A DNA stretch of 64,000 nt, taken from positions 46,624,001-46,688,000 of the forward strand of contig NW_027266264.1 of assembly GCF_022045235.1 (NCBI RefSeq), in the 5' to 3' direction. Position numbers and translations under genes: made by a program. The notes under the pieces were generated by a model, which saw nothing but the letters and a program-made list of their open reading frames with translations, searched no databases and was not told the origin of the DNA. The DNA comes from Haliotis cracherodii (taxonomy: Eukaryota). Below, one piece after another: positions 1-61,360 of the stretch. Numbering within the stretch: position 1 is the first letter of the stretch; every line of letters begins with the position of its first letter.

Positions 1-10
1 GGTTATACAT
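1..10 (-). CDS. First codons (MYN...) of a further FoxAB-like copy continuing off the left edge of the window
   Basis: 1-~166 is identical to 7839-~8004 (offset 7838), i.e. the ATG, 5' leader and core promoter of the 6772-7848 gene. Intactness cannot be judged from this window. Confidence 0.7.
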
Positions 11-93
11 GATTCCTGGCTCAATGTGCAGCAGGTGAGAAATGTATTACCTCAGTAGGCAGAGGAATGTTTATCCCCCTCGTCACGGCGAGG

Positions 94-270
94 TTTATAG
101 TCCCTGGCCAGATAATCCCCTCAACACGCGCTTTACAGATCTCAATTGCCTCTAGATTAGGTAGCCTTTGATATGTAAATAACCGTATGTCGTCACTGAT
201 AATGGGCGTCGCTCTAAAACATCTTTCAAAAGTTTTTAGGTACGATTGGTCAAGAGCTATAATCTCGCCG
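94..270 (-). promoter_or_regulatory. FoxAB core promoter (left-edge copy)
   Basis: TATAAA 94-100, TAATCCCC 113-120, CCAAT 245-249, GC-box variant ~263-269; spacing matches the other copies. Confidence 0.6.
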
Positions 271-1140
271 TTCACTTGTGAGTTGCATTACAGTATATGA
301 AATATGTGCTATTATTCGCACGAAAGACGTTACATCCACCAGCGTGTTCATAACGATGACGGAAAGTAATAAAAAAACACTAGATTACAATAAGTGTGTT
401 AATGGTTAAATAGTTGTAGCATGGATTCCTTTCGAAAGGCTTATAGACTTTGGAGATGTCGAAAGAAAAGGCACCTCACATTTAGTATTTATAGAAGTTG
501 GTATACAATATGAACGATCTTGTGACTTCTACTCGACTGTAGAAGTGTCACCATGTTCAGTATATGTATATTGTGGACGAGGAACCGGTTGGTTCAAGTC
601 TAAGTAAAGTTTATGTTCTGTTCTGTTCAGTACATAGCTGACACCAACAATCGTATTGGGTAGACATATTGCTGTTTTCTCAAGGATTGTCACCGAGCTT
701 ATTGATATCCCAACAAACCAAAACCACACTATCAAGGGCTGTCAGTATCGGTCATCACAAATACAACAACAACCTGTCGGTGTTAAAAGCTCAAATGTAG
801 GTGGTTGTATTGGCATTGCTACTGTGTGCAATACTCGAAGATGGGGACGTGCCAAAAATTGCACCATAAGATGATTTTGTTTATGTTGACATTGATTATT
901 AAAAATATATTTGTCTAAGATACTATAAAACCACCACAATAATATACTATATACGTTTCATTATGGGTGCAGATAGAATATGGCTGATTTCGGCGTTAAA
1001 CAACAATGTAAACAATCAACTGTGTATAGTTCAGGCTGCAGACAGAGTATCTCACAGCATAAATATATTAGTGTAAAAGGGGTATATAAAATATACTACC
1101 GGTCACTAGCCATATAAAATATGTTTTCTTAGTTGGAGAA

Positions 1141-1960
1141 TTAAAATGTAGGTTTGGGCTGTGTAATATACATAATATTTATAAAGTAAAATAAGTTTAT
1201 CAGTATTAATAACTCTAGTAAGTTGGAATAGCTAAAACTGACCTTTGCGTATAAACCTTCACGCAAATCATCGTACACAGGGAAATCCAACAATACATGA
1301 CATTCATCCCCAACACTTTCCTGACACTGAAAACACACTCTTTCATTCACATTCATATTCGAATATCTGCCTGTTTCCAACTTCAGATCTAAGAAGGCAG
1401 AGTGGTTTAGAACGAGGCATATGCATACTAACATAACTTTCACACCCATACACATCTTTAAACATTCTATACGTACGTAAGTTATTACCACCCGTTCTTC
1501 CGAGAGGCTTGCGTAACAGTTCATTCCAATCAGTCACATAAAATCCCATGCAGATAACCTGCACACCTGCAAGTACACTTTTCACGCTCACATTCTCTAA
1601 AATATTCAACCCCCATTCGTTCAGCTTTGCCAGTATATCAAACGTACACAAGCATACCGTTCAGACCACATAAAACATTCTTATTTAATCTAAGGAGGTT
1701 CTAGTAAAACGACAATACTGTAACAATACACATCCACTATCTAACTGTCGGAGGAATCCATCCCATATCTCCATTAACAGCAACATTTGGAGCGTATTTA
1801 CCCAATCCTAAAATAAATCTCAAAGCACGATGGTGAACGGCATTTACAGTAGAAATGTCACGATGACCCCAGATAGATGCCCAAAGATTCAAGACTGACC
1901 AAACCATCGTATCGTACAATTTGGAATAAGCAGTGGATTGCATACGTCCGATTGCCTTAG
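1141..1960 (-). mobile_element. Degenerate LINE 3' portion (post-RT region and Cys/His finger)
   Basis: Frameshifted pieces: ASIWG...AVHHRALRFILG, LRTYRMFK, LETGRY...RVCFQC...DECHVLL. Confidence 0.75.
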
Positions 1961-2117
1961 CATTGTAGTCAAAATGTGTGAGTGAGGTTGGTTTAACACG
2001 GCTTTGACACTACACATGCTGTCCATTTACATGGTGCTGTACTAAGTAAACAAATGCTAATAATTACAATCTCAAAATGAGCCATTAAATGACCAAAGTC
2101 ACCATAGGCTGTCTGAA

Positions 2118-2250
2118 AGATGTACACCACACCCTGTAGGATAACCCCTCACCCAAGGGCGTCAGGTGACATATCCGCGGACACCAGTGTCTTCCCCGGG
2201 TCTATGTCCTGTAGCTATAGAAGTAAGCACTAGGGTCAATATTGATTCAG
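2118..2250. promoter_or_regulatory. Paralog-conserved upstream element CNE1 (ends in TCAATATTGA palindrome)
   Basis: Related copies at ~9388-9517, 13438-13530, 44090-44180, 50060-50170 (degenerate) and 63348-63500. Confidence 0.5.
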
Positions 2251-2469
2251 ACCCGTACATGCTTACGAAATATGCAGATATTTCAGTTTATTCACGAAAT
2301 GCACATATCTACACATATCGACACATATGCACAATGTATAATTAACATATTCGAGGTTATAAAACCCAAATTAAACTATACGATTATAGTGTCAAAAGTA
2401 AAATTATATAAATTATAAATTCTCTTATCGATCGGGTACAATATTTTGCTTGATGCTTTGACAGATACA

Positions 2470-2831
2470 GATATCAATAACATGCTGTGATTAATGGCAC
2501 TGAAAGAACAAGCCATGCGTTGCAAGGAGTTCCAGTATTCCAAAAGATCAAAGAAGCAGGACTAAACATGCAAATGTAAATGTGCGACAAAATAAGTCAC
2601 CCACTTAGGGCATATTTTCAGCAAAGATGGCATCCATGCCAATATACTTCAAAAATAGATTCAGTCACAGAGATCCCACCCTCTAAAAATGTCCATGACG
2701 TGTGTCACTTCTTAGATTTGGTCTCGTATGATCACAAATTTGTAACACAAATTCTGGTATCGCCTCCCCCTCTATACAATCTTCTGAAAAAAGACGCATC
2801 TCTCAAATTGTGGCAAATTAGGGCAACTTGA
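2470..2831 (+). mobile_element. Gypsy-type LTR retrotransposon pol remnant
   Basis: KIDSVTEIPPSKNVHDVCHFLDLVSYDHKF...PLYNLLKKD resembles the RT-RNaseH linker. Confidence 0.65.
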
Positions 2832-3196
2832 TTCTCATGGCGTAACTTGGAGTGATGTTGTTAAACCGCGTCTTTTGACCATACAAGAATCTTCCTGTTC
2901 TGATTTTTAGGAACAAACAATGTTGACTGGTAACGTTTCGTTTTCGTCAGTTTTCAAGGAAGGGTATATGGTGCTTTATGATCATTTCCCATCACAGTCA
3001 ACAACTGTTATGGCCTGATGAAATGGAAGGTTTGAAATGATTATTAATAAATAAAGGTTACAGGCCTACTGTCTCTCTGTCAAAAACACTGTATTGATCA
3101 GGATGTCCATATTGTGATCCAGATGGAGGCTGAGTTTTTTTTATTGAAATAAAATTAAGAACCCCCCCCCCTCCCCCAGAAATGACACAATCAAAT

Positions 3197-3342
3197 GACA
3201 CAAGTAATCGTAATGGGGAGACTTAATGGTGCGTTAAATAAGTTGTCTCTACACTCACAGACATCACAACAAATCAACACCATGCTCTGTCACATTGTCA
3301 GCACATGTAACAGCAGTAACAACATCCAATCTGTGTCAGTAG
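3197..3342. promoter_or_regulatory. Paralog-conserved upstream element CNE2 (GTAATCGT..GGGGAGAC..TTGTCTCTACAC..CATCACAAC..TCTGTGTCAG)
   Basis: Copies at ~10939-11081, 38537-38680, 44770-44902, 50592-50707, 51037-51183 and 63783-63910, all in the same orientation. Confidence 0.55.
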
Positions 3343-3789
3343 CAGTGGATGTGCGGAATATTATTCTGGGATAGTAAAGGTATACAATCTTAGAGGATAG
3401 TAGTTTTAATGCTGAACAAAAATGACTGACTAAGCTGGCAAAATAGAAATGAATTCCCTGACTGAATGCCATCATATTTTTCTTTAAACAAGAATACGTG
3501 TTCTTTTCTTTAATTAAGAAGACATGTACATGGTTATGCTACATATGAATACACTTGATATGTTACTAAATACTGAAAGTTTATTAGAACACAGAAAGCT
3601 AGCACAATTTGTAAAATTAAAAGTAGTATGTAGTATATACTGTATGTATAAAATGTAGTGTTACACACGCCTTTGTGTCACTACTTTACATCTGTCCATA
3701 AGTATGTTGTCATTAGAGTGTGGTTACAATGCTAGAGTGGTCAGAAGCAGGGTGGGGCGAATTTGATGACTACATGAGTGACCGAGTCA

Positions 3790-4070
3790 CTCAACCCTGG
3801 ATTGGAGCTTGTGATGCGAAGCTAGGCCGCTACCAATTTTGGTTTGATCAAATAGAGATTATCATTTGTCGGTTTCCTGTTTGCTTAGCTTCCTAATTTA
3901 CCTGAAAGGAACAACCCGTTTTGTTTAGCTACCAAAGACTAAACTTATCCGATCTTCAGAATTGACTTACCTCCGGATCAGAGGATGAAGGTAAGTTAGA
4001 TGGCGACAGAGGCGGACGATACTGCGCGCGACAGACATTCAAATTCAATTTCACAGAAGGCCGACTTAAT
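3790..4070. promoter_or_regulatory. Paralog-conserved upstream element CNE3 (TTT(G/T)ATCAAATA.AGATTA ... GTAAGT.AGATGGCGAC ... CACAGAAG)
   Basis: Copies at ~4590-4885, 11450-11745, 12675-12745 (partial), 45305-45620 and 51705-52020. Confidence 0.55.
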
Positions 4071-4240
4071 AACGATATATATTTATACCCATCCACCCAA
4101 GGGTTGCCCAAAAGATTACCTTGTCCAAACTTAGCATTGGTTCACCGAATATTCTAATCAATTATCCTTTATTTTCATTAGAAGTACATCATTGATGTAT
4201 GAAATATGTAGAACTGTGTGGTTGTTGTTTTTTGTTTTAA

Positions 4241-4885
4241 GATAACAACACATAAATAAATCGTACTTATTATCAAATAGAAGAAAATGCCTTTCTCACA
4301 TCACTTTTCTTTAAAAAATAATGGCATATTCTTACATTCTTAAAGTGTTTTTTTTTTATTTCTTCACGTAACACGTGCTTAGTATACATACTATTACACA
4401 CGTCAGTACTTTACTTATTTCCATGTACACGCCTTAAGCATGTTGTCATTAGAGTGACAAAACAAGTGGTTACAATGTTAACATGCTGTTTTGATGTCAG
4501 TAGCAGGATGAGACTGTCTGTTTCTCCACCTCAAGATTTTACCTGACGATGTCGGCATATTTGATGTTTCTATAAGGTAACAAGATTCAATCAACCCTGG
4601 ATTAGGGCTTGTGGGGTTAAGCAATTGTGGTTTGATCAAATACAGATTACCATTTGTCGGTTTCCTGTTTGCTTAGCTTCCTAATTTACCGGTAATGAAC
4701 AACCAGCTTTATTAAGCAAGCAAATGACGAACATTATCCGATCTTGTGAATTGGCTTACCAGAAACCGCTTATCTCCCTTTACCATTCTCCCGTCAGTGG
4801 ATGAATGTAAGTAAGATGGCGACAGAGTGGACTTTACTGCACGCGACAGACATTCAAATCCAATTTCACAGAAGGCCGACTTAAT
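4241..4885. repeat. Near-identical duplicate of 11104-11745 (includes CNE3)
   Basis: About 640 bp of very high identity by direct comparison. Confidence 0.9.
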
Positions 4886-6771
4886 ACCTTTTAATATGCA
4901 TATTATATATATACATATATATATATATTTATAAGGGGTATGTAACAAAACGAAAACAACCACATAGTTCTACATGTCTACCTTCATGTCATCTTGTCAT
5001 GTGCTTTATTTCATACATAAATGATGTAGTTCTAATGAAATTATAGGGTAATTGATTGGAACATCTTAACGTTGTTTTGTGTGTTGTTTTACATCATTCA
5101 CAACGCACGTGTGTGAATCTCATCTTGTCAAAGCCTTGGTTCATACCAGATTGATTTGATGAGCATGTGGATGCTTTTGAAGATATATTTTCACGATCAT
5201 TAGGTCTAGAGCCAATTTACACTTAATACTACATGGAATCAAGGTTATCATTTTACATTTATGATCACTATTCCAATATCCCCCACGACCTTCCCCAGGC
5301 GCCTGATAATTCTGATATTAATGTTCATAAGCGTACTCACCTTCTCTCAAACTTATTATTTTATACACAAATTGTTTATTCTGCACAGTCACACATTGCA
5401 TCGTAATCAAGGCAAATCTGGGATTCGAACCCACATCACACTATGTCACTCCATTGACACAGGCCCACATCCACGAGCTGAGACATTGATTATGTTTGTT
5501 GCTTCTGCTGGTGTAAACCAATGTGCATGTTTGTGTATAATCGGTTACATGCCTTTGGGTAAAAGTTTAAGAATAATAGCAATAATGTTCTTACTGGAAG
5601 AATGGCTAATGTTCACAGGTGTCCACAATGCTAGAAATTCCGCCTGTGTCCGGCTTCTGATGGGTTGGATTTAAGATGGGTACGAGGTGACAAACGTGTT
5701 TTCAACTTATGTTACTTAATTACCTTAATCCAATTTAAACAAATGCAAAAATACACGATGAGTCTAAACTATGATCAATTCATAAAAGGGGTTAATTACC
5801 GATAGTTCTTTTTCTGTCCTGGCATGTTCACAAGCATGTATAAGTGGATCGGTTTAATATTTAGGAAATAAGCATTTTGTGTTTTAGCGTAGAGTTGGTT
5901 AACTGTAGATATAACCATGCAAAATTGAATTCTGAATAAAAGGAGATCACATTGAAAAGGCAAAATGGTTCGAAACAAGACATGACATTGTTTCCTTTGA
6001 ATTCTTATTTGTATTCACCAAAAGCTTGCAGGTGTCACTATAGGGTGTATGTAATAGATATAGTACTGACACAACTTCTCTGTCTATATCAGCGCGCAAG
6101 CAGATACTCGAGTTCTACAAACTATAACGTGACTGCAGATCGTACAAACTCCACCATCACATTCGGAGCAGATTGCACGATTTCATGTAAACTGTCCGGT
6201 TCATGCAGTTACGTTTGTTGTTGAAGGCCTGAATTTTGAATGTATACGTTTCACGAAGCTGGAGAGTTTCACGCCTTTATAAACTGTTTACTTTCGAATA
6301 CTTTATCAGTGTAAAATGTACTCCATCATCACAAAACAGTGACTATCCATTGGACAAAAGTATTTGCCTGTGCTATAAGGGATACTTGTAGCTGAATCGG
6401 CTTGTACACCGCAAGGCAGCAGGTCTCGGGGTGCACACGACAGAGGTGTATAAAATACAAATGTACAAATAAGTCTTGTTAATTTCATTTATTATATTTC
6501 TATATTTAGTTCACGTTGTACATTATGTAACCATAAGTATTTTACCTGAACGCAACATATTGTTACTGTAAGGCAATATATACCGTATGTTTTCAGTTAA
6601 ATACACACAATACATATTTGACAATACAGATATGATATTGTCAGTAGTATTGCCATCATATTCAAAGCCACGAATTGTTTGTCATGCACCAGATGTTGAA
6701 TCAACTTATATTCCTATATAGCACTTGTGTATATCAGTCTTCATTATCGCACCAGCAGGGGTGTATCCACA

Positions 6772-7848
6772 CTAAGCATGGTATGATCTCGTGGACCTTG
6801 TGCCCCAACTCTGACTGATGTCGTTTGAAGAATCAGTCATTGACTGTTGTATGTTTGGATACAGGTAGTTGCAGGAAGGGTCAGGTATGCTTAAACTGGG
6901 TGAGGGAACTTGTGGCGCGTATGTTCCGGCCAGTGGAGAGCTTCCCGGGGGAGAGCTGGAGAGAGGGGAACCGGTCAGAGAACTGATGATACTTCTGGTG
7001 TTGTAGTAGCCGGCTGTAGGAGGAGAGTAGCCTGTAGGAGATCCCATGGTCCAGATACAGGGGTCCGGTTTGCCTATTGTGCTGTAGGGGTGTGTCTGGG
7101 TCAGTCCCGGGGGTAAGGAGCCGTGACTCAGGGGGTTGAAGCTTGTGTAAGGAGATGGACCCCCATACAATCCCAATAACTGTCCGTAAGGACTGGCAGG
7201 ATGGAATGAAGGATCTTCTCGACGTTGCTTTTGTGCGGACTTGAAACGCTTAGAACGACGAAGGAAACTGCCGTTACCAAACATGTCCCCACAAGATGGA
7301 TGCAGAGCCCACAGGTTACCCTTGCCTGGTTTCCCCGGGGGTCGGGGCACCTTGACGAAACAGTCATTGAGGGAGAGGTTGTGTCTGATGGAGTTTTGCC
7401 ATCTCCGTTGGTTGTCTTCGTAGTATGGGAATCTCTTGACGATGTAGTTGTAGATGTCTTTGAGAGTCATCATGCCTGTTGTAGAACTCTCGACGGCCAT
7501 GGTGATGAGAGCCACATAGGAATAGGGAGGCTTCTTGTTGGAAAATCGTCTGTCTTGTTGTGAGAGGGTGGATGTTCCCGAGAAACCGTCCCCTTCTCCG
7601 TTCGAGGATACCGATGAGGTAGGAGACGGAAGAATGTTGTCATAATTTGGAGATCCTTGTTGCGTGTGACCTGATCCATGTGTGATCAGGGATCTGACGT
7701 CTTCTCCCTCAGTAGCTCCAGATGTCTGAGACACGACTGGGACGGAGTGTTGTGAAGATATGGAGTGATCAGATGGAAGAGGTGTCATCTGCTGTCCCAT
7801 GAAGGGAGATGTACCTGGGACATACTGGAACATGAATGGGTTATACAT
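6772..7848 (-). CDS. foxAB: Forkhead transcription factor, FoxAB-like (copy A), intronless, 358 aa
   Basis: Full forkhead domain (~7240-7536) [24 protein letters not shown]...[58 protein letters not shown]. The GMMTL, KGNxWALHP and [16 protein letters not shown] residues fit FoxAB better than FoxA or FoxB as I recall those families. Minus-strand AATAAA at ~6488-6493. Confidence 0.85.
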
Positions 7849-7931
7849 GATTCCTGGCTCAATGTGCAGCAGGTGAGAAATGTATTACCTCAGTAGGCAG
7901 AGGAATGTTTATCCCCCTCGTCACGGCGAGG

Positions 7932-8104
7932 TTTATAGTCCCTGGCCAGATAATCCCCTCAACACGCGCTTTACAGATCTCAATTGCCTCTAGATTAGGT
8001 AGCCATTGATATGTTAATTGGATTGGCATAGGTAATGGGTGTTTCCCCTTAAACATAATTAGACACTGTCAGTCACTATTGGCCAGGACAATAACCCCGC
8101 CTCC
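7932..8104 (-). promoter_or_regulatory. FoxAB copy A core promoter
   Basis: TATAAA 7932-7938, TAATCCCC 7951-7958, CCAAT 8078-8082, GGCGGGG 8095-8101. Confidence 0.65.
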
Positions 8105-8896
8105 AGGTAGCAATGCTTTGTTACTGCCTTGAGACCTCCATGTTACATGAAGATGACACAATCATAAGTAGGTTTGTAATGCTCATATCAACTGTACACT
8201 CATACAAAAGCCCTGTTCAAGCATAATGGTGCTGAAAAATGCGAGCGAATGTTATTTTAGTATGATAGTAGGTATATAACCTCAAACTTGAATATGGAAG
8301 TGATGTCCAATATAACTGGCAATCGTAGCGGGGTATTGTTGCTTTGCAAGACGCATATGTGAATGTGGCCGTAAGGAATGGCTCAAGCCGCAGCAGCTGC
8401 AATTACGTACTACAGATTGTTATAAGACTTATCCCACCCCCGACCCCCGACGTTATTTGTACTAGATATTTTTAAAAGTTATTTTTTAACCTTGTATTTA
8501 ATATTGAGTATACATGACTGGAGTCTCGTAGACTTTAATGACCGGATATGCAATACACATATTGTAATATGTTTTATTGTGTTCTATCACTGTGCAGTAT
8601 GTGACACTATGCAATATGTGGTAATCCTTATTATCTTCTTCTTCAATGTTAAACATGTGATTTGGCCACAGATAGGGGCAATGCTTCAGAACTACTTCAT
8701 ACTGCCGACTGTTCCGCTCTCATTCGCTGACTAGCTTAAAATTTAGTTGAACGCTGATAGAGTGGTCCCAGACGAAGAGTCCAAGATATTTCATCGCTAC
8801 GGAGAATGTCATGGTTTCTTCCACGATTTAAATTTGATGGCATATACTGATCAAAGGATTTACTGGAGGCATGTGTTTGAATTCTCTATATACTAG

Positions 8897-9058
8897 GAGC
8901 GAGTGAGTTGTATTTTAAGCAGCCTTTAGCAATATAGCAATATCGCGGCGGGGGACAACAGCAATGGGCTTCACACATTGTACCCATGTGGAGAATTGAA
9001 CCAGGGCATGCGACGTGACGAGTGATCACTTTAACTACTGGGCTACCCCACCGCCCCC
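8897..9058 (-). mobile_element. Short tRNA-derived SINE (family 3)
   Basis: GGGGCGGTGGGGTAGCC head, B-box-like GGTTCAATTC, (CACT)n-like tail; related copies at 10520-10683, 29972-30138, 35682-35780 and 45922-46080. Confidence 0.75.
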
Positions 9059-9582
9059 TGGGACAATAACCAGAGATTGTTTTTCAGATTGTTTAATGCA
9101 AACGCTAACACTTCACTCAGTGACAGCTTTAATAAATATAAAACATATTCATCAAATATAGCAATAAATATATATTTGCAATGAAACAACTCTTCATATT
9201 GCCTCCAAACTGTATTTCACAAGTAATTTCCGGAACCTTAATTCCCGATTTGCAAATACACAATAAATAAGCGTTCATGTTTAAATGACACTTCACAATA
9301 AAACCTGAAGAAGCAAGTTAGTTGCAGTAGTAATGAAACGTTAATTGCATGCTCAGCTAATGAAATGTCACTATAGGTTGCTTTAATGATGTACATCACA
9401 CCCTGTATCGAAATCCTCACCCAGGGGCGTCGGGTAAAATACCGTCGGATTCTAATGTCCCCCTGGGCCTATCGCTTGTGTTCTTTTTGGAGTAAATACC
9501 AGGGTCAATATTGAATCATGTATACCAACTTCATGACATGCTTTTCAGCATGGTGGAAATGCGTTTTGTATCATTTAAGTTA

Positions 9583-9990
9583 CGTAATACGAACATCTTG
9601 TAGACGTAATACGAATATCTTATAGACGTAATACGTACATCTTATTGGCGTAATACGAACAGCCTAAAGCCGTCATACGAACATCTTATAGGCGTGATAC
9701 GAACATATTATAGGCGTACTACGAACATCTTATTGGCGTAATACGAACATCTTGTAGACGTAATACAAATATATGATAAGCGTAATACGATCATCTTATA
9801 GGCGTGATACAAACATCTTATAGGCGTAATACGAACATCTTATAGGCGTAATACGAACATCTTAAAGCAGTAATACGAACATCTTATAGGCGTAATACGA
9901 ACATCTTATAGACGTAATACGAACATCTTATGGACGTAATACGAACATTTTATAGACGTAATACGAACATTTTATAGACAGAATACGATC
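9583..9990. repeat. 22-bp minisatellite (GTAATACGAACATCTTATAGGC)n, about 18 copies
   Basis: Direct reading. Confidence 0.95.
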
Positions 9991-10519
9991 GTCTTGAATC
10001 CACATCCACGACCTACAAATTAATGCACCAGTTGTTCGTAGGTGTATGATTATGATCAGTTTACCCATCTGTGGTGTTCCATAACAATGCATCCACAACG
10101 GATGCCAAGATACAGCATATATTCAACATATCTATTTTTTCTCAGCATATGACAATATTTTCGCACCTGCAGTGCAAATGGTTGACACCAGATTATCAAC
10201 CATAGTAAATATTACAACATCGATATTGTCTTAATTTTGTCTCTGACTAGTATCATAATCACTTTTGACAACATAGAGGTGGTTCAACATGATTATCATC
10301 AACAAATAGGTTGTTCATGGTCCTCAACACTACATATATGAATGCATCTATTACAAGCTTGTATTATGTAGTTAAATATTGAATTGCTTTCGTCGTATCC
10401 AAATACTTATGAATATTCAGTGAAATATATTGTTTGTCACTGACATGATTATTTAGGAATTGCTCCATGTCCTTCCACAGATTTGTAAGAAATTTGCATT
10501 CCTAAAAGGTGAGTGGTAG

Positions 10520-10683
10520 AATGTGTAGCATAGTGGTAAAGGCTTTCGTTTGTCACGCCAAGGACTTGGGTTCGATTAGGGTTCAATGCGTGAGGCCGAT
10601 TTTATGGTGTAACCACTGATTAACCTTGATATTGCTGGAATATTGCTAAAAGCGACGCAAACCACACCCACTCAGTCACTATT
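10520..10683 (+). mobile_element. Short tRNA-derived SINE (family 3)
   Basis: TAGCATAGTGGT A box, GGTTCGATT B box, shared tail. Confidence 0.7.
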
Positions 10684-11723
10684 CATTATAATGTAATGCG
10701 TACTTTAATTTGTCAGACAGAGCCAATAACAAGTCCACTTTATTGTTCTTGTGGCCACTGACATGGGCAAACCATGCATTCATAGCCAGACTGGCAATCC
10801 TATTGATTTTTTAGTGAAACACTTGACCCAGCATATAATACACAATAACATAAATTGTCCTTTTGGACAAATTTCTGACATCCTGACAAAATCACCACCA
10901 AAAACAGGGAAACATTTAAGCATATCTCAGGATAAGCTGACACAAGTAATCGTAACGGTGAGACTTAATGGTGCGTTAAATGAGTTGTCTCTACACTCAC
11001 AGACATCACAACAAATCAACACCATGCTCTGTCACATTGTCAGCACATGTAACAGCAGTAACAACATCCAATCTGTGTCAGAAGCTAACGATATCGTCCT
11101 GCGATAACAACAGATAAAAATAATCGTACTTATTATCAAATAGAAGAAAATGCCTTTCTCACATTACTTTCCTTTAAAAAATAATGGCATATTCTTACAT
11201 TCTTAAAGTGTTTTTTTTTATTTCTTCACGTAACACGTGCTTAGTATACATACTATTACACACGCCAGTTCTTTACTTATTTCCATGTACACGCCTTAAG
11301 CATGTTGTCATTAGAGTGACAAAACAAGTGGTTACAATGTTAACATGCTGTTTTGATGTCAGTAGCAGGATGGGACTGTCTGTTTCTCCACCTCAAGATT
11401 TTACCTGACGATGTCGGCGTAATTGATGTTTCTATAAGGTAACAAGATTCAATCAACCCTGGATTAGGGCTTGTGGGGTTAAGCAATTGTGGTTTGATCA
11501 AATACAGATTACCATTTGTCGGCTTCGTATTTGCTTAGTCTCCTAATTTACAAGTAATGAACAACCAGCTTTATTAAGCAAGCAAATGACGAACATTATC
11601 CGATCTTGTGAATTGGCTTACCAGAAACCGCTTATCTCCCTTTACCATCCTCCCGTCAGAGGATGAATGTAAGTAAGATGGCGACAGAGCGGACTTTACT
11701 GCACGCGACAGACATTCAAATCC

Positions 11724-11848
11724 AATTTCACAGAAGGCCGACTTATAAGTCTCAATGCAATTATTTAATACATACCTTTTAATATATGTAGTTAAGGTAT
11801 GTATTAAATAATTGCATTGAGACTTATAAGTCGGTCTTCTGTGAAATT
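11724..11848. repeat. 55-bp inverted repeat with a 15-nt spacer
   Basis: 11724-11778 is the reverse complement of 11794-11848 with one mismatch. Confidence 0.9.
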
Positions 11849-39478: not shown

Positions 39479-39494
39479 AATAATGACCGTTTCT

Positions 39495-41805: not shown

Positions 41806-41989
41806 NNNNNNNNNNNNNNNNNNNNNNNNNNNNNNNNNNNNNNNNNNNNNNNNNNNNNNNNNNNNNNNNNNNNNNNNNNNNNNNNNNNNNNNNNNNNNNN
41901 NNNNNNNNNNNNNNNNNNNNNNNNNNNNNNNNNNNNNNNNNNNNNNNNNNNNNNNNNNNNNNNNNNNNNNNNNNNNNNNNNNNNNNNNN
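41806..41989. other. Assembly gap (N run)
   Basis: Run of Ns. Confidence 1.
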
Positions 41990-45989: not shown

Positions 45990-46020
<31 letters not shown>

Positions 46021-49552: not shown

Positions 49553-49628
49553 TTTGTTATCTCAGAAAACCCAGTATGTTATAACTGAGTAACAGTGAGA
49601 CTGTATGCCTTCACATTTGTCGGCGGAG

Positions 49629-49808: not shown

Positions 49809-52800
49809 CCTACTTACAGGCCAATCAGTTGTTCCACATTGATAGTAACCTCTAGCCTGCATAATGAACATGTATGATACTGGGAAAAATGTCTACCTAC
49901 TTCTCTTCACCATAGTTAAATTAATTTTCCACAAAACCATAAGCCGAATAAAATATATATGGCGATGAATGTGTTTCTACATTAGATGAATAACACAAAG
50001 GAATTTTGGCCACAAGGCAACACTTGTAATTACATAAGTACACATTTTGATAAAGGCTTTCCTACCCCTCTTTTCACTGAGGCAGCTCAACCTATATCCA
50101 TAGGGTTCCAGTAGCCCTCGGGGATCAAGTACATGTCAGGTTCTAAAGCTTAAGTCAACACTGATGTCATAACCCTGTAGAACAAATTACATTTTACCAA
50201 ATATATGTCTAGATGATAAAAGTAAAGGTTAAGGCCAAATGAACAAGACGTATTCTACGTATCAAAATATGTTAGATTGTTTGTCTTGATTCACGACACG
50301 TATCTCGAGCTGGGTATCATAATTGCAATGTTCTTGTAAATTAGATGCTGTAAATGGATACACTACAGCCCACTATGAGAGGAGGGATACATGCAATACA
50401 TTTATGATCAAAGGATCGTCATATCTTTGTGTCGAACTATAATGAGTTATGGTGACCTGTATGTAGATTTTGAAACCAGCGACACCTGGTGATATGCTTA
50501 GTGGGATAGGTTGGGCATATGTATGTGTTGTAAGTGAATGGTCCAAAGTGACATAACCACCACATGTCGGATACGTCACGGGCCATGGAAGCGGTAATCG
50601 TATCGGGGAGACGTAGCGATTCGTTAAAAGGTTGTCTCTACACTTATTGACATCACAACAATTCAGTATCGATCATCACTGAAATAACACCCAGTCTGTG
50701 TCAGCAGTTGAGTGGTATCAAGATCCTGTACAAGTACACCTCCTACATACCCCTTTGTCTGAATAATGTACGAGAATGAATGATTAAAAGCAAATTAACA
50801 GGCCAATATATTGATATAGGTGTTGCTCAAGTTTTCATTTGTTACAAGGTATTTTCCATTTGTTGTTGTCAGTGGAATGATGCTAATAATTTAAATTATC
50901 GCTATAGAATCTATTCGTCTTCTAATATTCAAGCTATGACTTTGTATGGACGAAGGGGATATTTTAGGCTAAACATGGACATTGCAAAAGTACTCAAATG
51001 CTCAGAGAATAGTGATGTGGCATGTTGGTGAAGGATGACGCAAGTAATCGTATCGGGGAGCCTTAATGACTCAGTTAATGTGTTGTCTCTACACTTATTG
51101 ACGTCACAATAAACACACAACATCACACTTCACGGGTTGTCGGCATCGATCATTACAGAGACAACTCATCATCTGTGTCAGCGGTTCACTTAATTAAATT
51201 TAGATCCCTTCATTGAACAAATGATGTTGTACAAACTGTGAAATTGTCCCTACGTTATAGTGTATACAGTGTGTCGGAATATTTCTACTCTGTAAATAAT
51301 GAGCTAGATTAACACTTCTTTATTTAGAGGTCTATATTATTCAAAACATTTGTATGGTCATATTAATGTTGTACACCCAGGGGGAAGGGATAGCATTACA
51401 GGTAGTAATGCAACATCATTGCAGTTTTAGTTGAACAACAGATATTTCCTCATATATCGATTGCTTCTTTTATAGCACATGTGTGTATTATTGCACACCT
51501 GAAAGTGTTACAGAGATTGGCTTCTCGGAAAGTGGAATACCAGTTGATGAAACCATCTGGTAAAGGTGACAAACTACATGTGATTGTCCCCCAATGCTGT
51601 TCATTACATGGGGTTTTGCAATTATGCTAGAGGTGTTCGTGAACATGTTAGAAAAACACCACATGCTTTGATGTAGCCGCCCAGGTAACAGGATTTAAAG
51701 GAAACTGGATTAAGATTCGAAGGCCCAGCCACATATAGAAAATCTATTGTTTTATCAAATACCGATTATGACTGTTGTTCATAGCAAGTACAATATTGAT
51801 GCAGTTATTGTTTTCTTACGCTTCCTAATTCACCGTCAGTAGCACGGCCGCCCTTTATCAACTGGCTATTGACTACCTTATTTCCAAAATGGATTACTGT
51901 AAAACTGCTTTTCTCCCTTTCTATCACCCCGATACTGAAATCAGAGTAAGTACGGTGGCGACAGCGGCAGGGGACAATGCAGAGGCCAGACGCCAGAATC
52001 CAATATCACAGAAGACCGAAATATAAATCTTGTTTTATTTCTTATGTGTGACATCAACATTATTTACGGCCTCTTTAAGGATGTTCAAAAAATTGTACAA
52101 GCTTTAACAATATTAACCCAAATTTTAATAATGATCACTCCCAGAATAGAATCCGACAACGGAAATGTCGGACAAGTCCATTTTACGAACAGGTGGATTA
52201 AGTTTGTTTTTCCCCGAATATTCTCACAATCCTTACGTCGATTGTCTTCACATTTTCTCCTCATACCAATTGTCATATCTCTCCCGCTTTAGTATGCGAT
52301 CGTCCGGCCACTGCGTTTGTCTCGCAGCCCAGCTACATCTATGGGGAACAACTTGCTGGACATTTCCCTCTAAAAAATAACGTCGTCCAATATATGACGT
52401 CATCAAATTGCGAGCACATATTCAAATCTCCAGAAATGAAATAATGATCGAACAATGTTTTATCGTGAAAAATACCACTCTTCGTTCTTCATTGCCCTTT
52501 GCGATTAATCGCGTAGCTATCATATATATCCAAGAAAAATGTTTTTTGAAGTTGAATATACCATGATTAGGAATGTTTAATTCATGTTACACTAATCACT
52601 GCGGAACAGTGTACGTCGTTTGTTGGTGAGGGAGAAACAAACCAGAAGAACCCTACAGTACAGCAGGGTTAATGATAAAGCAGGCATCAACTCAGCATTG
52701 AGCGTTATCATATTTCGATAACCGAAATATAAATTGAAAAACAAAAAGGCAAACTATCATTGAGCGTAATTTGGTTTCCAATTCCAATTGTGTCCTTCAA

Positions 52801-54189
52801 ATGTGAAAGAGACCTACTAGACCTAAGTAACCCGAGGGTGGGCGTGGACTGTACTACAGATTGTTTGTAAATATGATGGCGTTTATTCATATACACATAA
52901 CTACCATATTTTAATCACCTATTTTGACTGAATAAATTTATCATATCCCATACACTGAACAACACACACACACTGAAGTATCATAGTATTACATGGTCAA
53001 AGAACACTACAATGACATCTACGAAACACAAGCCGGGCAAACAAACTACATCACAGAGTGTTCGTAAGACACTGAAAAACTTCAATTAATTAGATACACA
53101 TCTCACCTTCCATGATTTCACAGACGCTACACTATTGCTGTGAAATCCCAGATAGTAATGCCTTACAGACGGCAGTTTCCAGATTGTGAATCTCATTGTG
53201 CTTGACGTGCTGTCAAGCTGTAAATATCCATGTCATGTTCTTGAATTTGTTAGAATTAAGACAATATGCCGCTACAGCCATTTTCCAATTTGAAATCCAT
53301 TAAAATTGACTGAAGTCCTTTTCCTGTTAGAATTTCTTTTTTAAATATTGAAAATTCTATTTTAAATGTCTGTATATATCTGTAGACAACTTACATGTGA
53401 TTTTATGTGAATGCATTATGTAGTTGTTACTGTCAATTAATTTGCTTAATAACATTGAACACAAAGTACTGACACAAGCAGATGAATGGCCGGTCACATT
53501 TTTTGGACGAAACATTTGAAGAATTGCAAGACGAATGTTACACAGTTTCGCCGGAGCTAGAATCATGTAAGCCGGTCAAGCAAAAGTAATAGTCTGTGAC
53601 CAGTCACTGTAAGGTCATTGTCGTGGGCTAAAGTCTAGTATAAATATTGAATCAGCCAGCGGTATTCACGTAACAATCGCCAGGTGTCGCTTCTGCAGAC
53701 TGTTTCCTTGATGCCAGATCATGATGTAGGTTCGTCGAGTTACTACACAGCTGTAGGAATCTGTGTAGCTCGTAGATGTAGCTACTACCAATACCACTAA
53801 TGACGAATACGTTTCATTGACAGACAGGCATGTCTAACCAACCTACCCGACAAGACCTTACTTAACAGGGATTAAAAACGATTGAGTGATCACATATATA
53901 TATATAAAATGTACTTTTTTCTATTTACATATTATCGAGTGATCACACATTTCTGTTCATAAACGGGACAAACATTCAATAACACTAGGTGTGTATATGT
54001 GGTTGTATACAGTGTCTCAATTCACTTGTCACAATAGTCAATACGTAAAGGTTCAATATCAACTGATAGTTAATGGTATATGTTGCTATTTGCGTCGATT
54101 CTGTAGCACCCGGGTGAAAACGTACATATGGATAGAATTGCTCAGAGGAACTTCGAAGTCCTATCGAAACTGGGAGTGGCCTCACCCAG

Positions 54190-54622
54190 GGGCCAGCTTC
54201 CCGGGGGAGAGCTGGAGACAGTGGAGCCGGTCAGAGAACGTGTGATGCTGCTGAGACGTTGTAGTAGCCGGCTGTACGAGGAGGGTTAGACTAACATTTA
54301 GTCTCTGAAATCTTGTATTACACAATATCCGTCTTGACTCTAAAAATAAAACAATATTTCCCTATGCTGTGGAATAGAGCTAGCTACAGCTGGCTAGACT
54401 TGCTTTTGTATGCGTTTCTAGATTTATTTATTTTTCATAGAATTAGACCCTGGGGTAAGGAGCTGAGACTCGGGGGTTGAAACTTGTGTAATGAGATGGA
54501 CCTCCATACAACCCCCATAACTGTCCGTAGGGACTGGTAGGATGGAATGAAGGATCTTCTCGACGTTGTTTTTGTGCCGACGGAGGAAACTGCCGTTACC
54601 GAACATTTCCCCACAAGATGGA
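54190..54622 (-). pseudogene. Truncated FoxAB-like pseudogene fragment
   Basis: Holds only the end of the forkhead box ([10 protein letters not shown]), followed by a 19-nt frameshifting deletion relative to copy C. Then the EDPSFH..SPYG segment, a replaced internal segment (~54283-54445), and the TAGYYN..LTGS..SSSPPGS segment (54190-54280). Confidence 0.85.
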
Positions 54623-55690: not shown

Positions 55691-56284
55691 TATACGTCTT
55701 CATACGCATTTGTACATAAAGGACACCCTCTTGCTGTATCAAAGAATTGAAATCTTAACGTGAGTTTGTTTCGTTTGATATTTACACATCAAATTGAGAA
55801 GACTTGTTTCCACTTGATTACCTTCCCGAAATGAACAAAGTCACCACGTGATGATCAATATCAGACACAGCACGTTAAAGTCTATTATTTATCTATTGCC
55901 AAGTCCTTGTTTCTTGTCGGCTCAAGCATCAAAGTGAAGGTGTCTTGCTCCCCAGCATATACAGACACCCTCCCGTGATACTCCGGTAAAGCAACAAGCA
56001 GCTTAGTGTAATCCGACCACACTACATGAAAACCAAAACCAAAATAGTGATAATCTGTTGTTTACTTTAAGTGACGAGGATCTTAAGTCACCTTTGGTGT
56101 AGGACGAACTCAATAGTTTATATGTCTTTAAATAATATACATTTTCGAAATAGTTTAAGTGCAATACTTTTTAAGATGTTTACAAGACGGCAAACAATGT
56201 CACAACATATTTGTTGTTATAAGTTACTACATGTGTGTTGATGCGTTCTATATGTGTATATACGGCAAGAAGTGACTGGATTCA

Positions 56285-56449
56285 NNNNNNNNNNNNNNNN
56301 NNNNNNNNNNNNNNNNNNNNNNNNNNNNNNNNNNNNNNNNNNNNNNNNNNNNNNNNNNNNNNNNNNNNNNNNNNNNNNNNNNNNNNNNNNNNNNNNNNNN
56401 NNNNNNNNNNNNNNNNNNNNNNNNNNNNNNNNNNNNNNNNNNNNNNNNN
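56285..56449. other. Assembly gap (N run)
   Basis: Run of Ns. Confidence 1.
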
Positions 56450-56525
56450 TAGGTAATCCTCGTGAAATAGCGAAATAAGCTATACTGAAACCTGCTGATG
56501 TCTTTTTGTCAGTCCAGTGGTCATA

Positions 56526-56698
56526 GGATCTGTGCACACAGGAGCGTATACCTGATCTTTGTAAAATGACAACATTGAGGGATCTGTGCACACAGGAGCG
56601 TATACCTGATCTTTGTAAAATGACAACATTGAGGGATCTGTGCACACAGGAGCGTATACCTGATCTTTGTAAAATGACAACATTGAGGGATCTTTGCA
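56526..56698. repeat. 54-bp perfect tandem repeat, 3 copies plus a partial
   Basis: Direct reading; close to an assembly gap. Confidence 0.9.
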
Positions 56699-57228
56699 CG
56701 CGACCAAGTATTCTAATACTATTTCACAGTAAATCTAGATTAAAATTACACCTTAACTGGATTATAGCAACTTTATTGAAATTTCTTCCATGACCAAATC
56801 AACTAAGTGTGAAGTGTATCAGTTTCTGTGGCTGTGTTCTGATCGTTTGGTTCTGGCTTGATGCAGCGTCTAATGTAAATGTGCATGGTACATGGCATGT
56901 GTGTGAAACGGACATAGCCATACAACAGACATAGTTTCAGTGAAGGTGTCAGGAGGTAGCCACGAGAATGTAGTGTTGAGAGCTTGGGTTTACATGCGTT
57001 TACATACACGCTAGATGTTTACAGCCAAACACCATCGCTGATTCCATACCCTCGCAATTACATTCAACGCGTGAAAAGAAACTTCATTTGCTGCAATCTA
57101 GGTTATGACGTCGCTCGATGGAGATCAACTTATTATTGGATACACTGACCAGCACGTCAGAGAAAAAAGACATCTTTCATGACATGTTAAAGATATGGCA
57201 AAATAAACTCCAATGCCTTGTGGATATA

Positions 57229-58713
57229 TACTGAACCAAATTAAAAACTTCACAATCCTAAAATTTTAACATTTTGACCACTTATCATTGTGGGCCCTTA
57301 TTGTGTATTTAAACAGTCATGGCCACGTATTGTCTTCAGATAACACCAGTGTTTGTGCAGGTGAATCGATCAAAATCATGTGCACAGCACTATAGTGGCA
57401 AAAGTGGTTTTTCACGTGCAACTGGTCACGTGGCCATAATACCGCACGTGTTTTCAGCCATACTTGTTAGCAGTCATTAACAAAAAAAGAAAAACACAAG
57501 AAAACAAAAGTCTTTACGGCCATTTGTCATGCCACGCCTTTCAAAAGTGCAACGTGAACGTGCCATCGGCATGTTGCAGACGAGAACGTCCGTAGCTGAA
57601 GTCGCAAGGACGATGGGTTGTAGTCGACGGACTGTTTATGATTTACAGACGCCTCTACAGCAAACGGGTACCACCGCTGATCGCCCTCGGCCAGGTCGAC
57701 CACGTGTGACGTCACATGCAGAGGATCTTCAGATTGTCTTACGTCACCTCCGTAACCGATTTTTGACGGCTACATCAACCAGAAATGAACTGTTTAGGGG
57801 TAGAATGAGTGCGCAAACTGTTCGAAACCGTCTGAGAACTGCTCACCTTCAAGCACGACGGCCATACTGCGAGCCGATTCTGACTCAATTACACAGACGT
57901 CAACGTCAATTGTGGGCACAGCGACACTTACGATGGACTCAGAGGAATTGGAATCAAGTCGTCTTCAGTGATGAATCCCGATTTGCTGATGGTAGGGCGA
58001 GGGTGTGGAGGCGCCGTCATGAACGTTACGCCCAGTGTTGTGTACAGGAAGTTGACAGATTTCGAGGCGGAAGTGTCATGGTGTGGGGTGCTTTCTGTGG
58101 CAATGCACGTTCCAGGCTTGTTGTCATCCGTGGCAACCTCAACGCAGAACTGCCTTTTATGGCAGCACATGGACCCGGTTTGATCTTCCAACACGACAAT
58201 GCCAGACCCCACACAGCAATTTTGACAAGGAATTTCCTTCAGAATGAGTCAACGTCATGGACTGGCCGTCAAGGTCTCCCGACCTCAATCCCATCGAACA
58301 CGTCTGGGATGCTCTTAGCAGAAGTCTGCGCACTCTCCAGAACCAACCACAGAATTTGCAAGATCTTGGCACCATTTTGCAGCAACAATGGCGTCGTCTT
58401 CCCAATCATGTGTTCACAAGCATCACAAGGTCCATGCGGAGGCGTTGTGTGGCAGTTGTAAACGCACATGGTGGCCATACATGCTACTGAACTTGTGTGC
58501 CATCAGATTCTCGTGCTTGGGACTTATGGTTTAAACTGTTGATGTTATAACCGAATACCGAAGGTGCTTGGAACAAATTATGGTTACCACCGTTAATTAA
58601 AATCCTTCTTTGGACATTAATGATTAAAAATTACCTTCTCTGATACATTTGTCCGTTGTATATCATATATTGGATTACTTTTAAAAATGTGAAGATTTTA
58701 ATTTGACTCAGTA
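57229..58713 (+). mobile_element. Tc1/mariner DNA transposon, frameshifted transposase (57529-58490)
   Basis: TA TSDs; ~26-bp imperfect TIRs (tactgaaccaaattaaaaacttcaca / tgtgaagattttaatttgactcagta); HTH, FSDESRF, VMVWGAF, FQHDNARPH, and WPSRSPDLNPIEHVW in a shifted frame. Confidence 0.92.
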
Positions 58714-58889
58714 TATGTTCAATAATAAAATTCACGGAAGACATGGTGTGATTAGCCACTGCTCGACGACGAACACATGGAGATATAATAATGTATGTAC
58801 AAGATAATATTCCTGTAGTAGTTACTGTAGACACCGGTCTGCTGTGAATTTTATGATATCCTACAACCTATTGGGTCTCTAATATCTAC

Positions 58890-59575
58890 CATACCGAGGA
58901 CGGAATATTAAAGATATGATAACATGATGTTTGAGCCATACCGAGGAGGGAATATTGAAGCTATTATAACATGATGTTTCAGCACTACCGAGGAGGGAAT
59001 ATTGAAGGTATGATAACTTGATGTTTGAGCCATACCGAGGAGGGAATATTGAAGCTATTATAACATGATGTTTCAGCACTACCGAGGAGGGAATATTGAA
59101 GATATCATAACATGATGTTTGAGCCATACCGAGGAGGGAATATTGAAGCTAGTATAACATGATGTTTCAGCACTACCGAGGACGGAATATTGAAGCTATT
59201 ATAACATGATGTTTCAACACTAGCGAGGAGGGAATATTGAAGCTATTATAACATGATGTTTGAGCCAAAACCGAGGAGGGAATATTGAAGCTATTATAAC
59301 ATAATGTTTCAGCACTACCGAGGAGGGAATATTGAAGCTATGATAACATGATGTTTGAGCCATACCCAGTAGGGAATATTGAAGCAATTATATCATGAAT
59401 TGTTAGCCATACCGAGGAGGGAATATTGAAGCTATTTTAACATGACGTTGAGCCATACCGAGGAGGCAATATTGAAGCTATCATCACATGATGTTGAGCC
59501 ATACCGAGGAGGGAATATTGAAGCTATTATAACATGATGTTTCAGCCATACCGAGGAGGCAATATTGAAGCTTTA
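58890..59575. repeat. About 47-bp minisatellite (TACCGAGGAGGGAATATTGAAGCTATTATAACATGATGTTT...), about 14-15 copies
   Basis: Direct reading; unit ends alternate between GAGCCA and CAGCAC. Confidence 0.95.
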
Positions 59576-60015
59576 AAGTGGGTAGTTTCAGCGCATGGAG
59601 AACACACACACGTACAACATCCAGCAGTGGGAGATAACACGCTGAACAAATTGAGATGCCATGATGATGTACAAAAATGACATCGAGATATGTTTCACAA
59701 AATAGTACTTAAGTTACAACACCACTACACAAGAATAGACAATTCTGTGATAAAGCATATTTATTTTTGAATGTATATTATACATATATAACAATAATTA
59801 TATAACTTATATCAAAGCATGAAAGAGTACATTTACAATTCAAGTCACTTGTGATATATGCATAGACATCAGTCGTTGCTGTGTCAACCAAGTTTATGTA
59901 TATTATGATTATATAGTGGCGTACCTGTACGCCTTTTACATCAATGACAAGCAATTTGATAGCACTATTATCGATGTTTTTGATCCTGAGATGATATGAT
60001 TCTCAGCCAATGCCT

Positions 60016-61122
60016 TCACTTTGACATACCATATGAATACATAGGCTGTGAAGCTCCTGTGAATGACTGACACAACTGAGGATAGGAATAATTATATAAA
60101 TTTTGGATAGCACTCGAGCTCGGTGATGACACTTGTGGCATATATGTCCCAGCTAGAGGCGAGCTTCCCGACTGGGCAGACAGCATATGTGGTATGTGAG
60201 GTCCTGGTGGAGAGCTGGAGAGAGGGGAGCCGGTCAGGGAGCTGTTAATGCTACTGGCGTTGTAGTAGCCGGCTGTAGGAGAGTAGACGCTAGGAGTTCC
60301 CAAAGTCCAGGTACTTGGGTCAGACGTGCCTGCTGTGTTGGGTGTGTGTGTCTGGGTCAGTCTCTGGGGTAAGGGGCTAAGATTCAGGTTGAAACCTTGG
60401 TAGGGGGACGGGCCCCCATAAAGACCAAACTGTCCGTATGATGTGAACCGCTGAATCAGTGCGTCGTCTTGTCGCTGTTTGTGTCCTGACTTGAAACGTT
60501 TAGAACGACGAAGGAAACTGCCGTTACCGAACATGTCCCCACAAGAAGGATGCAGGGCCCACAGGTTACCCTTGCCTGGTTTCCCCGGGGGTCGGGGCAC
60601 CTTGACGAAACAGTCATTGAGGGAGAGGTTGTGTCTGATGGAGTTTTGCCATCTCTGTCGGTTGTCTTCGTAGTAAGGGAATCTCTTGACGATGTAGTTG
60701 TAGATGTCGTTGAGAGTCATCATGCCTGTTGTGGAACTCTCGACGGCCATGGTGATGAGGGCTACGTAGGAATAGGGAGGTTTCTTGTTGGAAAACTGCC
60801 TGCTTTGTTTTGAGAGAGTTGATGTTCCCGAGACAGTGTCAATGAGTAGTTCGTCATTGCTGTCCTTATCTGTACACGGTGACGATGATGGTGAAGGCAG
60901 AGGGACGTTATCGGGCAATTCTGCCTGTTGTCGATCTGTTTCTCCGAGGAACATGTCATCTATTCTGTTCGGCGTTCCTGGGGGCGCAGTTGTCTCCCTT
61001 GTGAGTGCCACTCTTGAAAATGTTTGAGGCAACATGTACGACGGCAACACTGGTGTCTCACCCTGCATCACAGCATCCCCAGTCACGTTGCCATACGGAG
61101 ATACACTTGTATGATTCAACAT
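60016..61122 (-). CDS. foxAB: Forkhead transcription factor, FoxAB-like (copy D), intronless, 368 aa
   Basis: Same forkhead domain (NRQRWQ variant), unique N-terminus, shared [23 protein letters not shown] block. Confidence 0.85.
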
Positions 61123-61197
61123 TGCGTAAGTGACGGTTCTGCAGCGGTTTAACTGAGAAGGTACAGGAATGTATACCGTCGTTACTCCATCCTTAGG

Positions 61198-61360
61198 TTT
61201 ATATCACCGCAAAGATTATCCCCCTTAATACAGACAGCTTTGTCTCTTGATTTGTCAGCCATTGTTGGGTAATTTGTAATGGGTGACGTTCACAAGAAGG
61301 CGTGATATCTTTAATTGGCCGTTCACTCCTATTGGCGACCAGATCTGAAGCTCCGCCCAC
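61198..61360 (-). promoter_or_regulatory. FoxAB copy D core promoter
   Basis: TATAAA 61198-61204, TTATCCCCC 61216-61224, CCAAT 61331-61335, GGGCGG ~61353-61358. Confidence 0.65.

Follow-up and report, generated by a model that had tools for sequence, protein, structure and literature searches.

The black abalone, Haliotis cracherodii, carries an array of ten intact, co-oriented, single-exon forkhead genes of the FoxAB class, accompanied by two relics, within ~101 kb (C1:46,596,446-46,697,547). A 64,000-nt stretch of this region, referred to here as the window (RefSeq assembly GCF_022045235.1, contig NW_027266264.1, positions 46,624,001 to 46,688,000), contains the middle part of the array, and coordinates given without the prefix C1 are those of the window. 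With the genes named c1 to c10, beginning at the low-coordinate end, we consider it likely that the array comprises one canonical FoxAB gene, c1, and nine derived copies, c2 to c10, with a homogenised forkhead core, and that these genes may act as a battery, with a promoter shared by at least c1 to c8.

Four complete members of the array are found in the window, all on the minus strand: c5 (6772-7848; 358 amino acids, with the forkhead domain at residues 105-190), c6 (42429-43502; 357 amino acids), c7 (48461-49552; 363 amino acids), and c8 (60016-61122; 368 amino acids, with a 12-residue insertion in the C-terminal Ser/Pro region). The Pfam forkhead profile PF00250 is complete in all four open reading frames (ORFs), with E-values of about 1e-36 over profile positions 1-87 of 88, and the closest solved structures to the domain are those of FOXA2 and FOXA3 (FOXA2 chain 7yze, E = 2e-44 with phmmer). 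The ORFs are uninterrupted from ATG to stop, their RefSeq models have exactly the length of the ORFs, and the RNA-like contigs described below are colinear with the ORF, so that the four intact intronless minus-strand forkhead genes seen in an earlier note on the letters of the window are borne out. The start of a fifth gene that the same note placed at the left edge belongs to c4, of which the window holds only the first 10 nt (1-10, minus strand; ATG TAC AAT and one further nucleotide, encoding MYN). The rest of c4 completes an ORF of 358 amino acids outside the window (C1:46622934-46624010), which is identical to RefSeq model P0122 and, in a search of the same assembly, 99% identical to c5. 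The decayed sixth copy described there is a 5′-truncated relic at 54177-54622 (minus strand), the sole additional match in the window in a tblastn search with the FoxAB proteins of the window. Its sequence sets in suddenly where wing 2 ends, its N-terminus and recognition helix are gone, and the remainder, a C-terminal region of the type found in c3-c5 and c7, is interrupted by frameshifts, stop codons, and a replaced segment. Two intergenic assembly gaps occur in the window, one 440 bp 3′ of the c6 stop codon (41806-41989) and one between the relic and c8 (56285-56449), and no forkhead reading frame crosses either of them. The gap lengths are only estimates, and the copy count is therefore a lower bound. 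An ORF at 56217-56699 was rejected as a gene; it passes through the second gap and is an artefact.

To the left of the window lie c1 (375 amino acids), c2 (368 amino acids), and c3 (358 amino acids), and to the right lie c9 and c10 (371 amino acids each; 67541-68656 and 72432-73547 in extended window coordinates). These too are on the minus strand, and the common orientation proposed for the cluster thus holds for every copy. In both c9 and c10 the first in-frame ATG adds an N-terminal extension; an internal methionine of c10 (MFNY..) fits the conserved start M(L)FNPxxFQY of the other copies, and the true starts of the two proteins may be downstream. A second, small relic is located between c2 and c3 (C1:46610520-46610639, ~13.4 kb to the left of the window) and is equivalent to residues 246-285, with 60% identity. 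An orphan copy of the 146-bp non-coding element described below, ~1.7 kb upstream of this relic, suggests a lost array member. No further FoxAB copies are present within 30 kb on either side of the array, and the remaining forkhead matches of the 1.18-Gb assembly belong to other Fox classes at other loci. The cluster of at least five genes and a pseudogene deduced from the window is therefore real, with its number understated, as the flanking sequence raises the count to ten intact genes and two relics. All ten ORFs match H. cracherodii RefSeq models, eight of them identically and c2 and c10 with shorter models, and the proteins nearest to the window ORFs are from Haliotis only. The automatic RefSeq names are inconsistent, including D2-like, D5-B-like, and B2-like in H. 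cracherodii and lin-31-like, E3-like, unc-130-like, and FD4-like among the H. rufescens orthologs. They spread ten paralogs over five or more Fox classes, which would mislead comparative counts of Fox genes.

The genes of the array belong to the FoxAB class, as had been proposed from their sequence. Labelled references were taken from the supplement of Seudre et al. 2022 (PMC9539403), namely Owenia fusiformis foxAB-1 (1353 bp), foxAB-2 (1134 bp), and foxB (888 bp), which were found as proteins P0082 (450 amino acids), P0048 (377 amino acids), and P0183 (295 amino acids) by exact length and a match to the printed sequence. In a maximum likelihood tree of forkhead domains, all Haliotis copies group with Owenia foxAB-1 and foxAB-2, two echinoderm sequences (from Diadema and Amphiura), Lingula, Lineus, and several molluscs in a FoxAB clade with support of 98/93. 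A separate FoxB clade (98/94) unites Owenia foxB, Saccoglossus FoxB, vertebrate FOXB1/B2, and the FoxB gene of H. cracherodii, L011 (C1:8889460-8889807), which is 99% identical to a 'B1-like' gene of H. rufescens. A FoxA candidate in H. cracherodii, L013, is identified by sequence alone, in a tree without labelled FoxA references. The RefSeq names B1-like, B2-like, and lin-31-like would make the array FoxB, and the names D2-like and E3-like, together with FOXA2 and FOXA3 as closest solved structures, could point to another Fox class. We give these assignments almost no credence: the genome has its own FoxB gene in the separate FoxB clade, a grouping of the array with FoxB is rejected by the approximately unbiased (AU) test (p = 0.0006), and the pre- and post-domain motifs described next, which c2 to c10 have in modified form, recur in other FoxAB-clade sequences. 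FOXA2 and FOXA3 as the closest structures also fit the expectation for a class named 'AB'.

Beyond the domain itself, c1 has in common with FoxAB proteins of other phyla an N-terminal DKSSCMM motif, a pre-domain motif, a post-domain motif RRAKRFKL..IQHVSSYGHFSLYG, and a C-terminal '..QYS..LR' motif, these class motifs being derived from the present alignment and not from a published definition. The pre-domain motif and IQHVSSYGHFSLYG are shared by FoxAB-clade sequences of annelids, brachiopods, nemerteans, and molluscs. In c2 to c10 the N- and C-terminal class motifs are lost, and the pre- and post-domain motifs are kept in modified form, with RQFSNKK before the domain where canonical FoxAB has RRFADVK. 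The recognition helix, H3, is invariant from c1 to c10.

To our knowledge, FoxAB has been lost in vertebrates and ecdysozoans. The literature likewise describes the class as absent from vertebrates, and reports one copy each in Saccoglossus, Capitella, and oyster and two in Owenia, in agreement with the earlier note's statement that FoxAB is usually present as a single gene in invertebrates. The abalone expansion is lineage-specific, as that note had supposed: related genomes show it to be common to four Haliotis species, and the Haliotis clade (28 rows, support 100) includes none of the 102 non-Haliotis relatives in a 134-row tree, with the vertebrate matches FoxC2, FoxE3, and FoxD3 placed outside it. 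A full-length maximum likelihood tree was made of 39 proteins from H. cracherodii, H. rufescens, H. rubra, and H. asinina. In this tree c1 and its orthologs, present in all four species and contained within one 90%-identity cluster, are sister to a derived clade made up of c2 to c10 (100/100). The derived clade is divided into the supported subfamilies c2, c3-5, c6-7, c8, c9, and c10. The genes of H. cracherodii and H. rufescens are 1:1 orthologs, and c2, c3-5, c6-7, and c8 also have counterparts in H. rubra and/or H. asinina, which places the main duplications before these species diverged. As judged from these sequences, c1 is the conserved canonical FoxAB ortholog, with all of the class motifs and conserved across the genus, and c2 to c10 are a derived clade, seen only in Haliotis, that would have arisen by tandem duplication before the four sampled species split. 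The conserved copy c1 lies outside the window, and the first picture of the array is corrected in this respect. Between H. cracherodii and H. asinina, c1 is 82/98/90% identical in the N-terminus, forkhead domain, and C-terminus. Outside the domain, identity between the derived copies and their orthologs in H. rubra or H. asinina amounts to 59-77%, and the rate at which c2 to c10 evolve there is about 2-3 times that of c1.

In each of the four species the c3-5 subfamily has several copies, with three members in H. cracherodii, three in H. rufescens, three in H. rubra, and five in H. asinina, and its sequences mostly group by species. In H. cracherodii it is still duplicating, on units of 7.9 kb that are 98-99% identical overall. 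The right part of this three-unit tandem repeat (c3, c4, c5) occupies 1-11803 of the window on the minus strand, as delineated by self-comparison with blastn; adjacent units are 99.1% identical over 7839 bp, and a piece from the unit boundary recurs at 4241-4944 and 11103-11803. Just 1-3 amino acids separate the proteins of c3, c4, and c5, and such closeness raises the alternative that some copies, these three above all, are uncollapsed haplotypes or false tandem duplications. This is quite improbable in our estimation. Three units cannot come from two haplotypes, there are no gaps between the units, the differences between them affect ~1-2% of positions and are spread over their full length, and the subfamily is multi-copy in the other species as well. 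The other seven copies, with 58-88% protein identity and no intergenic DNA in common, are not alleles. More extensive DNA identity is seen only in the 7.9-kb triple and the c6/c7 pair (1071 bp, 92% identity); other paralogs have in common no more than a coding core of 650-700 bp.

Divergence within the array differs sharply between regions of the gene. Synonymous (dS) and nonsynonymous (dN) divergence was calculated by the Nei-Gojobori method, with the forkhead core defined as 86 codons (258 nt). Among c2 to c10 the core shows 0-12 nucleotide differences between copies, with a median dS of 0.076 and a dN of 0.010, and the middle C-terminal region, which is well aligned, has a median dS of 0.519 and a dN of 0.19. 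One example is the pair c2 and c3, which have 0/258 nucleotide differences in the core, a dS of 0.52 in the middle C-terminal region, and N-termini that can barely be aligned. As a control, c1 differs from the derived copies at 31-35 nucleotides of the core (dS 0.40-0.52, about 0.47), with a median dS of 0.65 in the middle C-terminal region, and the silent sites of the domain are therefore not intrinsically frozen. In 90-nt windows the paralogs are 97-100% identical in the core and 67-90% identical in the flanks. The identity of the nearest paralog also switches along the gene, and the pairwise homoplasy index (PHI) test for recombination gives p = 0.001 with 107 informative sites. The clearest mosaic is c7, in which the N-terminus and 110 bp of upstream sequence agree with c6 (dS 0.03) and the middle C-terminal region agrees with c3-5 (dN 0.04). 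For its part, c6 has nearly the same N-terminus as c7, a middle C-terminal region nearest to that of c2, and ~39 final codons unrelated to c7. Unequal crossover was rejected as the origin of the c7 mosaic, whose position and polarity are unlike those of a simple c5/c6 crossover product, and we infer gene conversion or ectopic recombination in preference.

These comparisons indicate that concerted evolution in c2 to c10 is limited to the DNA-binding box, and most likely a stretch of ~330 nt that includes the 258-nt core has been homogenised by repeated gene conversion, with purifying selection acting as well. The earlier note's description of varied termini around an almost fixed DNA-binding domain holds, and the sequences further argue that protein-level constraint alone does not account for the uniformity of the domain, whose nucleotides have themselves been homogenised. 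Alternatively, purifying selection might have kept the cores alike with no gene conversion, acting also on silent sites or the mRNA. Protein-level constraint on the domain is indeed strong, as the dN of 0.01 attests; the GC content at third codon positions is 0.66-0.71 in the core, above that of the flanks; a tract of 82 nt shows no difference even when c1 is compared with the derived copies; and the RNA-like contigs from related species show 1-3 differences in 141 nt of core. We consider this explanation unlikely, since c1 encodes nearly the same domain with far more nucleotide differences, the cores of c2 and c3 are identical despite the divergence of these genes elsewhere, and both the switching of the nearest paralog with its significant PHI test and the combination of c6-type and c3-5-type sequence in c7 speak for exchange between copies.

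The copies also share a compact promoter. Within 330 nt upstream of each of c1 to c8, alignment revealed a common series of motifs in the same order: a GC box, CCAAT, TAATC, GGGGATTA, and TATAAACC. By its sequence, GGGGATTA, which contains GGATTA, is a K50-homeodomain-type site, and TATAAACC is a TATA box located ~75 nt before the ATG. The promoter of c5, at 7849-8110 on the minus strand, has the CCAAT box, TAATC, GGGGATTA, and TATAAACC. A second shared feature is a conserved non-coding element of 146 bp, found with blastn 1.0-3.2 kb upstream of c2 to c7. The copy that lies 3.2 kb upstream of c4 is at 3197-3342 (plus strand), and further copies are at 10939-11084 (c5), 44770-44863 (c6), and 50594-50665 and 51037-51113 (c7). 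There are two orphan copies besides, the one near the c2/c3 relic and one in the window at 38537-38678. The latter is 97.9% identical to the 3197-3342 copy and lies ~600 bp upstream of an ORF of 292 amino acids (37059-37937, minus strand) in the 34.6-kb interval between c5 and c6. This ORF has no forkhead domain in Pfam, and its match to Pfam DUF4079 is weak and below threshold.

Three small Logan assemblies, from two related organisms and two studies, provide RNA-like contigs that were placed on the c5 region; their RNA status is guessed, and the candidate RNA runs, which contain 5-18% of the query words, are none of them recorded as RNA. Two of the three assemblies span 6659-7918 only, which takes in the coding sequence and extends beyond it by ~70 nt on the 5′ side and ~110 nt on the 3′ side; the third, at 6919-7856, reaches over less of the coding sequence. 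The N-terminal part that is specific to the subfamily is present in each of them, at 97-98% identity. In a large genomic run, no bin of the same region is left uncovered. The 5′ ends of the RNA-like contigs at 7917/7918 are just downstream of the TATA box, and the contigs probably correspond to a single-exon mRNA of a c3-5-type gene in two related organisms. Two joints within the coding sequence, at 7058 to 7241 and 7073 to 7241, which skip 182 and 167 nt, neither a multiple of three, were rejected as introns and taken as paralog-chimeric unitigs.

How the array might work can be proposed from these features. Because the recognition helix is invariant, all ten proteins are predicted to bind the same canonical forkhead DNA site, and they would differ through their N- and C-terminal effector regions. 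At least c1 to c8 would be driven by the common compact promoter with its CCAAT, TAATC, GGATTA, and TATA elements. With a promoter common to at least c1 to c8, an invariant helix, and divergent effector regions, the array could act as a co-regulated battery that raises FoxAB dosage and/or diversifies its output. In the literature, FoxAB expression in Capitella, Owenia, Saccoglossus, oyster, and Bugula falls in early cleavage stages, the gastrula, oral ectoderm, or larval tissue, and by analogy with these animals the likely setting in abalone is the patterning of embryonic or larval ectoderm, the mouth, or the organiser. A more specific version, which we offer tentatively and think less likely than not to be right, is that ongoing conversion locks the DNA-binding box of the nine-member derived subfamily and leaves the termini free, while a shared Otx/K50-homeodomain-type promoter fires the whole array as a co-regulated embryonic or larval battery. 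If true, the array would be a forkhead equivalent of the TALE arrays of spiralians or the Obox/Dux arrays of mammals, with many outputs and one DNA-binding specificity.

Alternatively, c2 to c10 could be functionless duplicates that are decaying into pseudogenes. They have lost the N- and C-terminal class motifs and evolve faster than c1, and the two relics show that copies do die in the array. We judge such general decay very unlikely, since all nine retain full-length ORFs of 357-371 amino acids and dN/dS is below 1 in every region, with 0.13 in the forkhead block and 0.35 in the middle C-terminal region. Moreover, several subfamilies have orthologs kept in up to four species, c2 to c8 share their promoter with c1, and a c3-5-type gene is probably transcribed in two related organisms. 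Some points do weigh against interpreting the array as a homogenised, functional battery. Its function is drawn entirely from other taxa, by analogy. The RNA-like contigs are only guessed to be RNA, come from related organisms, and record the position of sequence rather than stage, tissue, level, or strand. The evidence for gene conversion is drawn from the DNA of the H. cracherodii paralogs; dS in the N-terminus and the C-terminal tail is saturated or these regions cannot be aligned, so they were left unused and only the contrast between core and middle C-terminal region is reliable; and the 82-nt tract that c1 shares with every derived copy may stem from an old conversion in which c1 took part or from some constraint on the nucleotides themselves. 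Finally, it is the assembly, and not reads, that vouches for the three 99%-identical units.

Several other features of the intergenic DNA in the window were noted. A satellite of ~4.6 kb at 23980-28558 is built of ~240 copies of a 20-bp unit (TGTGATGTTGTCTCCATGTG) and has a pronounced strand skew; an ORF of 929 amino acids at 25416-28205 (minus strand) and the ORFs overlapping it were rejected as genes and are a product of this satellite. Intergenic minisatellites are present at 34636-35202 (period 23 bp, 25 copies), 9583-9995 (22 bp, 19 copies), and 17465-18344 (153-324 bp). A repeat of very high copy number flanks the c5 unit at 8918-9185 and 5300-5433, with a summed contig depth of 10^5-10^6 in all four runs and many loose ends, and is probably a SINE-like element. 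An ORF of 310 amino acids (57529-58461, plus strand), located between the relic and c8, encodes helix-turn-helix domains of the Tc1/mariner transposase type (HTH_Tnp_Tc3_2, HTH_29) and is a transposon remnant. Elsewhere in the genome, the FoxB gene L011 is on the same chromosome, C1, as the FoxAB array, and Owenia foxB, foxAB-1, and foxAB-2 (OFUSG09476, 09642, 09693) are on one 37.5-Mb contig, so that an old linkage of FoxB and FoxAB may exist. Three forkhead genes within 0.4 Mb on C2 (L019, L015, and L012; 54.62-55.01 Mb), of which L015 groups with vertebrate FOXC2, look like the conserved foxL1-foxC-foxF(-foxQ1) cluster.

The abalone genes resemble FoxAB elsewhere (sea urchin FoxABL, amphioxus, Saccoglossus, Capitella, Owenia, and oyster) in their clade, their single exon, and the motifs that flank the domain; a single exon is typical of most clade I Fox genes. 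They differ in number, with ten intact copies in one array where one or two are reported for other animals, and in that nine of them form a subclade whose pre-domain residues are altered, whose terminal motifs are gone, and whose domain is homogenised. A clade I Fox class has also multiplied within a lineage in the case of spiralian foxQ2, which has expanded in annelids and molluscs and of which certain paralogs are active during early cleavage (Seudre et al. 2022; PMC9539403). That expansion involves a different Fox class from the abalone FoxAB array. Domain-limited concerted evolution is not known to us from foxQ2. In other folds, the spiralian TALE (SPILE) and mammalian Obox, Rhox, and Dux genes form tandem arrays of early-embryonic transcription factors. 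Like the abalone array, these consist of tandem, fast-evolving, short, lineage-restricted developmental DNA-binding paralogs; unlike it, they have another DNA-binding fold and are early-embryonic, the abalone array being known here from its sequence. The SPILE homeobox genes are mentioned in PMC12550047. Considered as a process, the homogenisation has familiar parallels. Concerted evolution by gene conversion is known from tandem families such as the ribosomal DNA, histone, globin, and opsin arrays. The abalone genes share with them a tract in which paralogs are more alike than their age predicts, mosaic copies, and a significant recombination test, and differ from them in that the homogenised tract is the DNA-binding box of a transcription factor, from which the effector regions escape. 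Literature searches, whose coverage left out subscription journals, turned up no account of an expanded FoxAB class in abalone or any other animal. Tandem expansion of a Fox class as such is already known, and the abalone FoxAB expansion, especially its domain-limited concerted evolution, appears to be new.

FoxAB, which is expressed at the mouth, at the organiser, or in larval tissues, is among the least understood of the ancient Fox classes, and a ten-gene array in four abalone species would be the largest FoxAB complement found. The homogenised box has a practical side, in that one probe, morpholino, or guide RNA should reach all nine derived copies, with the N-termini suited to paralog-specific assays. 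One conserved and nine fast-evolving copies with the same recognition helix amount to a natural experiment on the divergence of transcription factors through their effector regions, and not through DNA-binding specificity.

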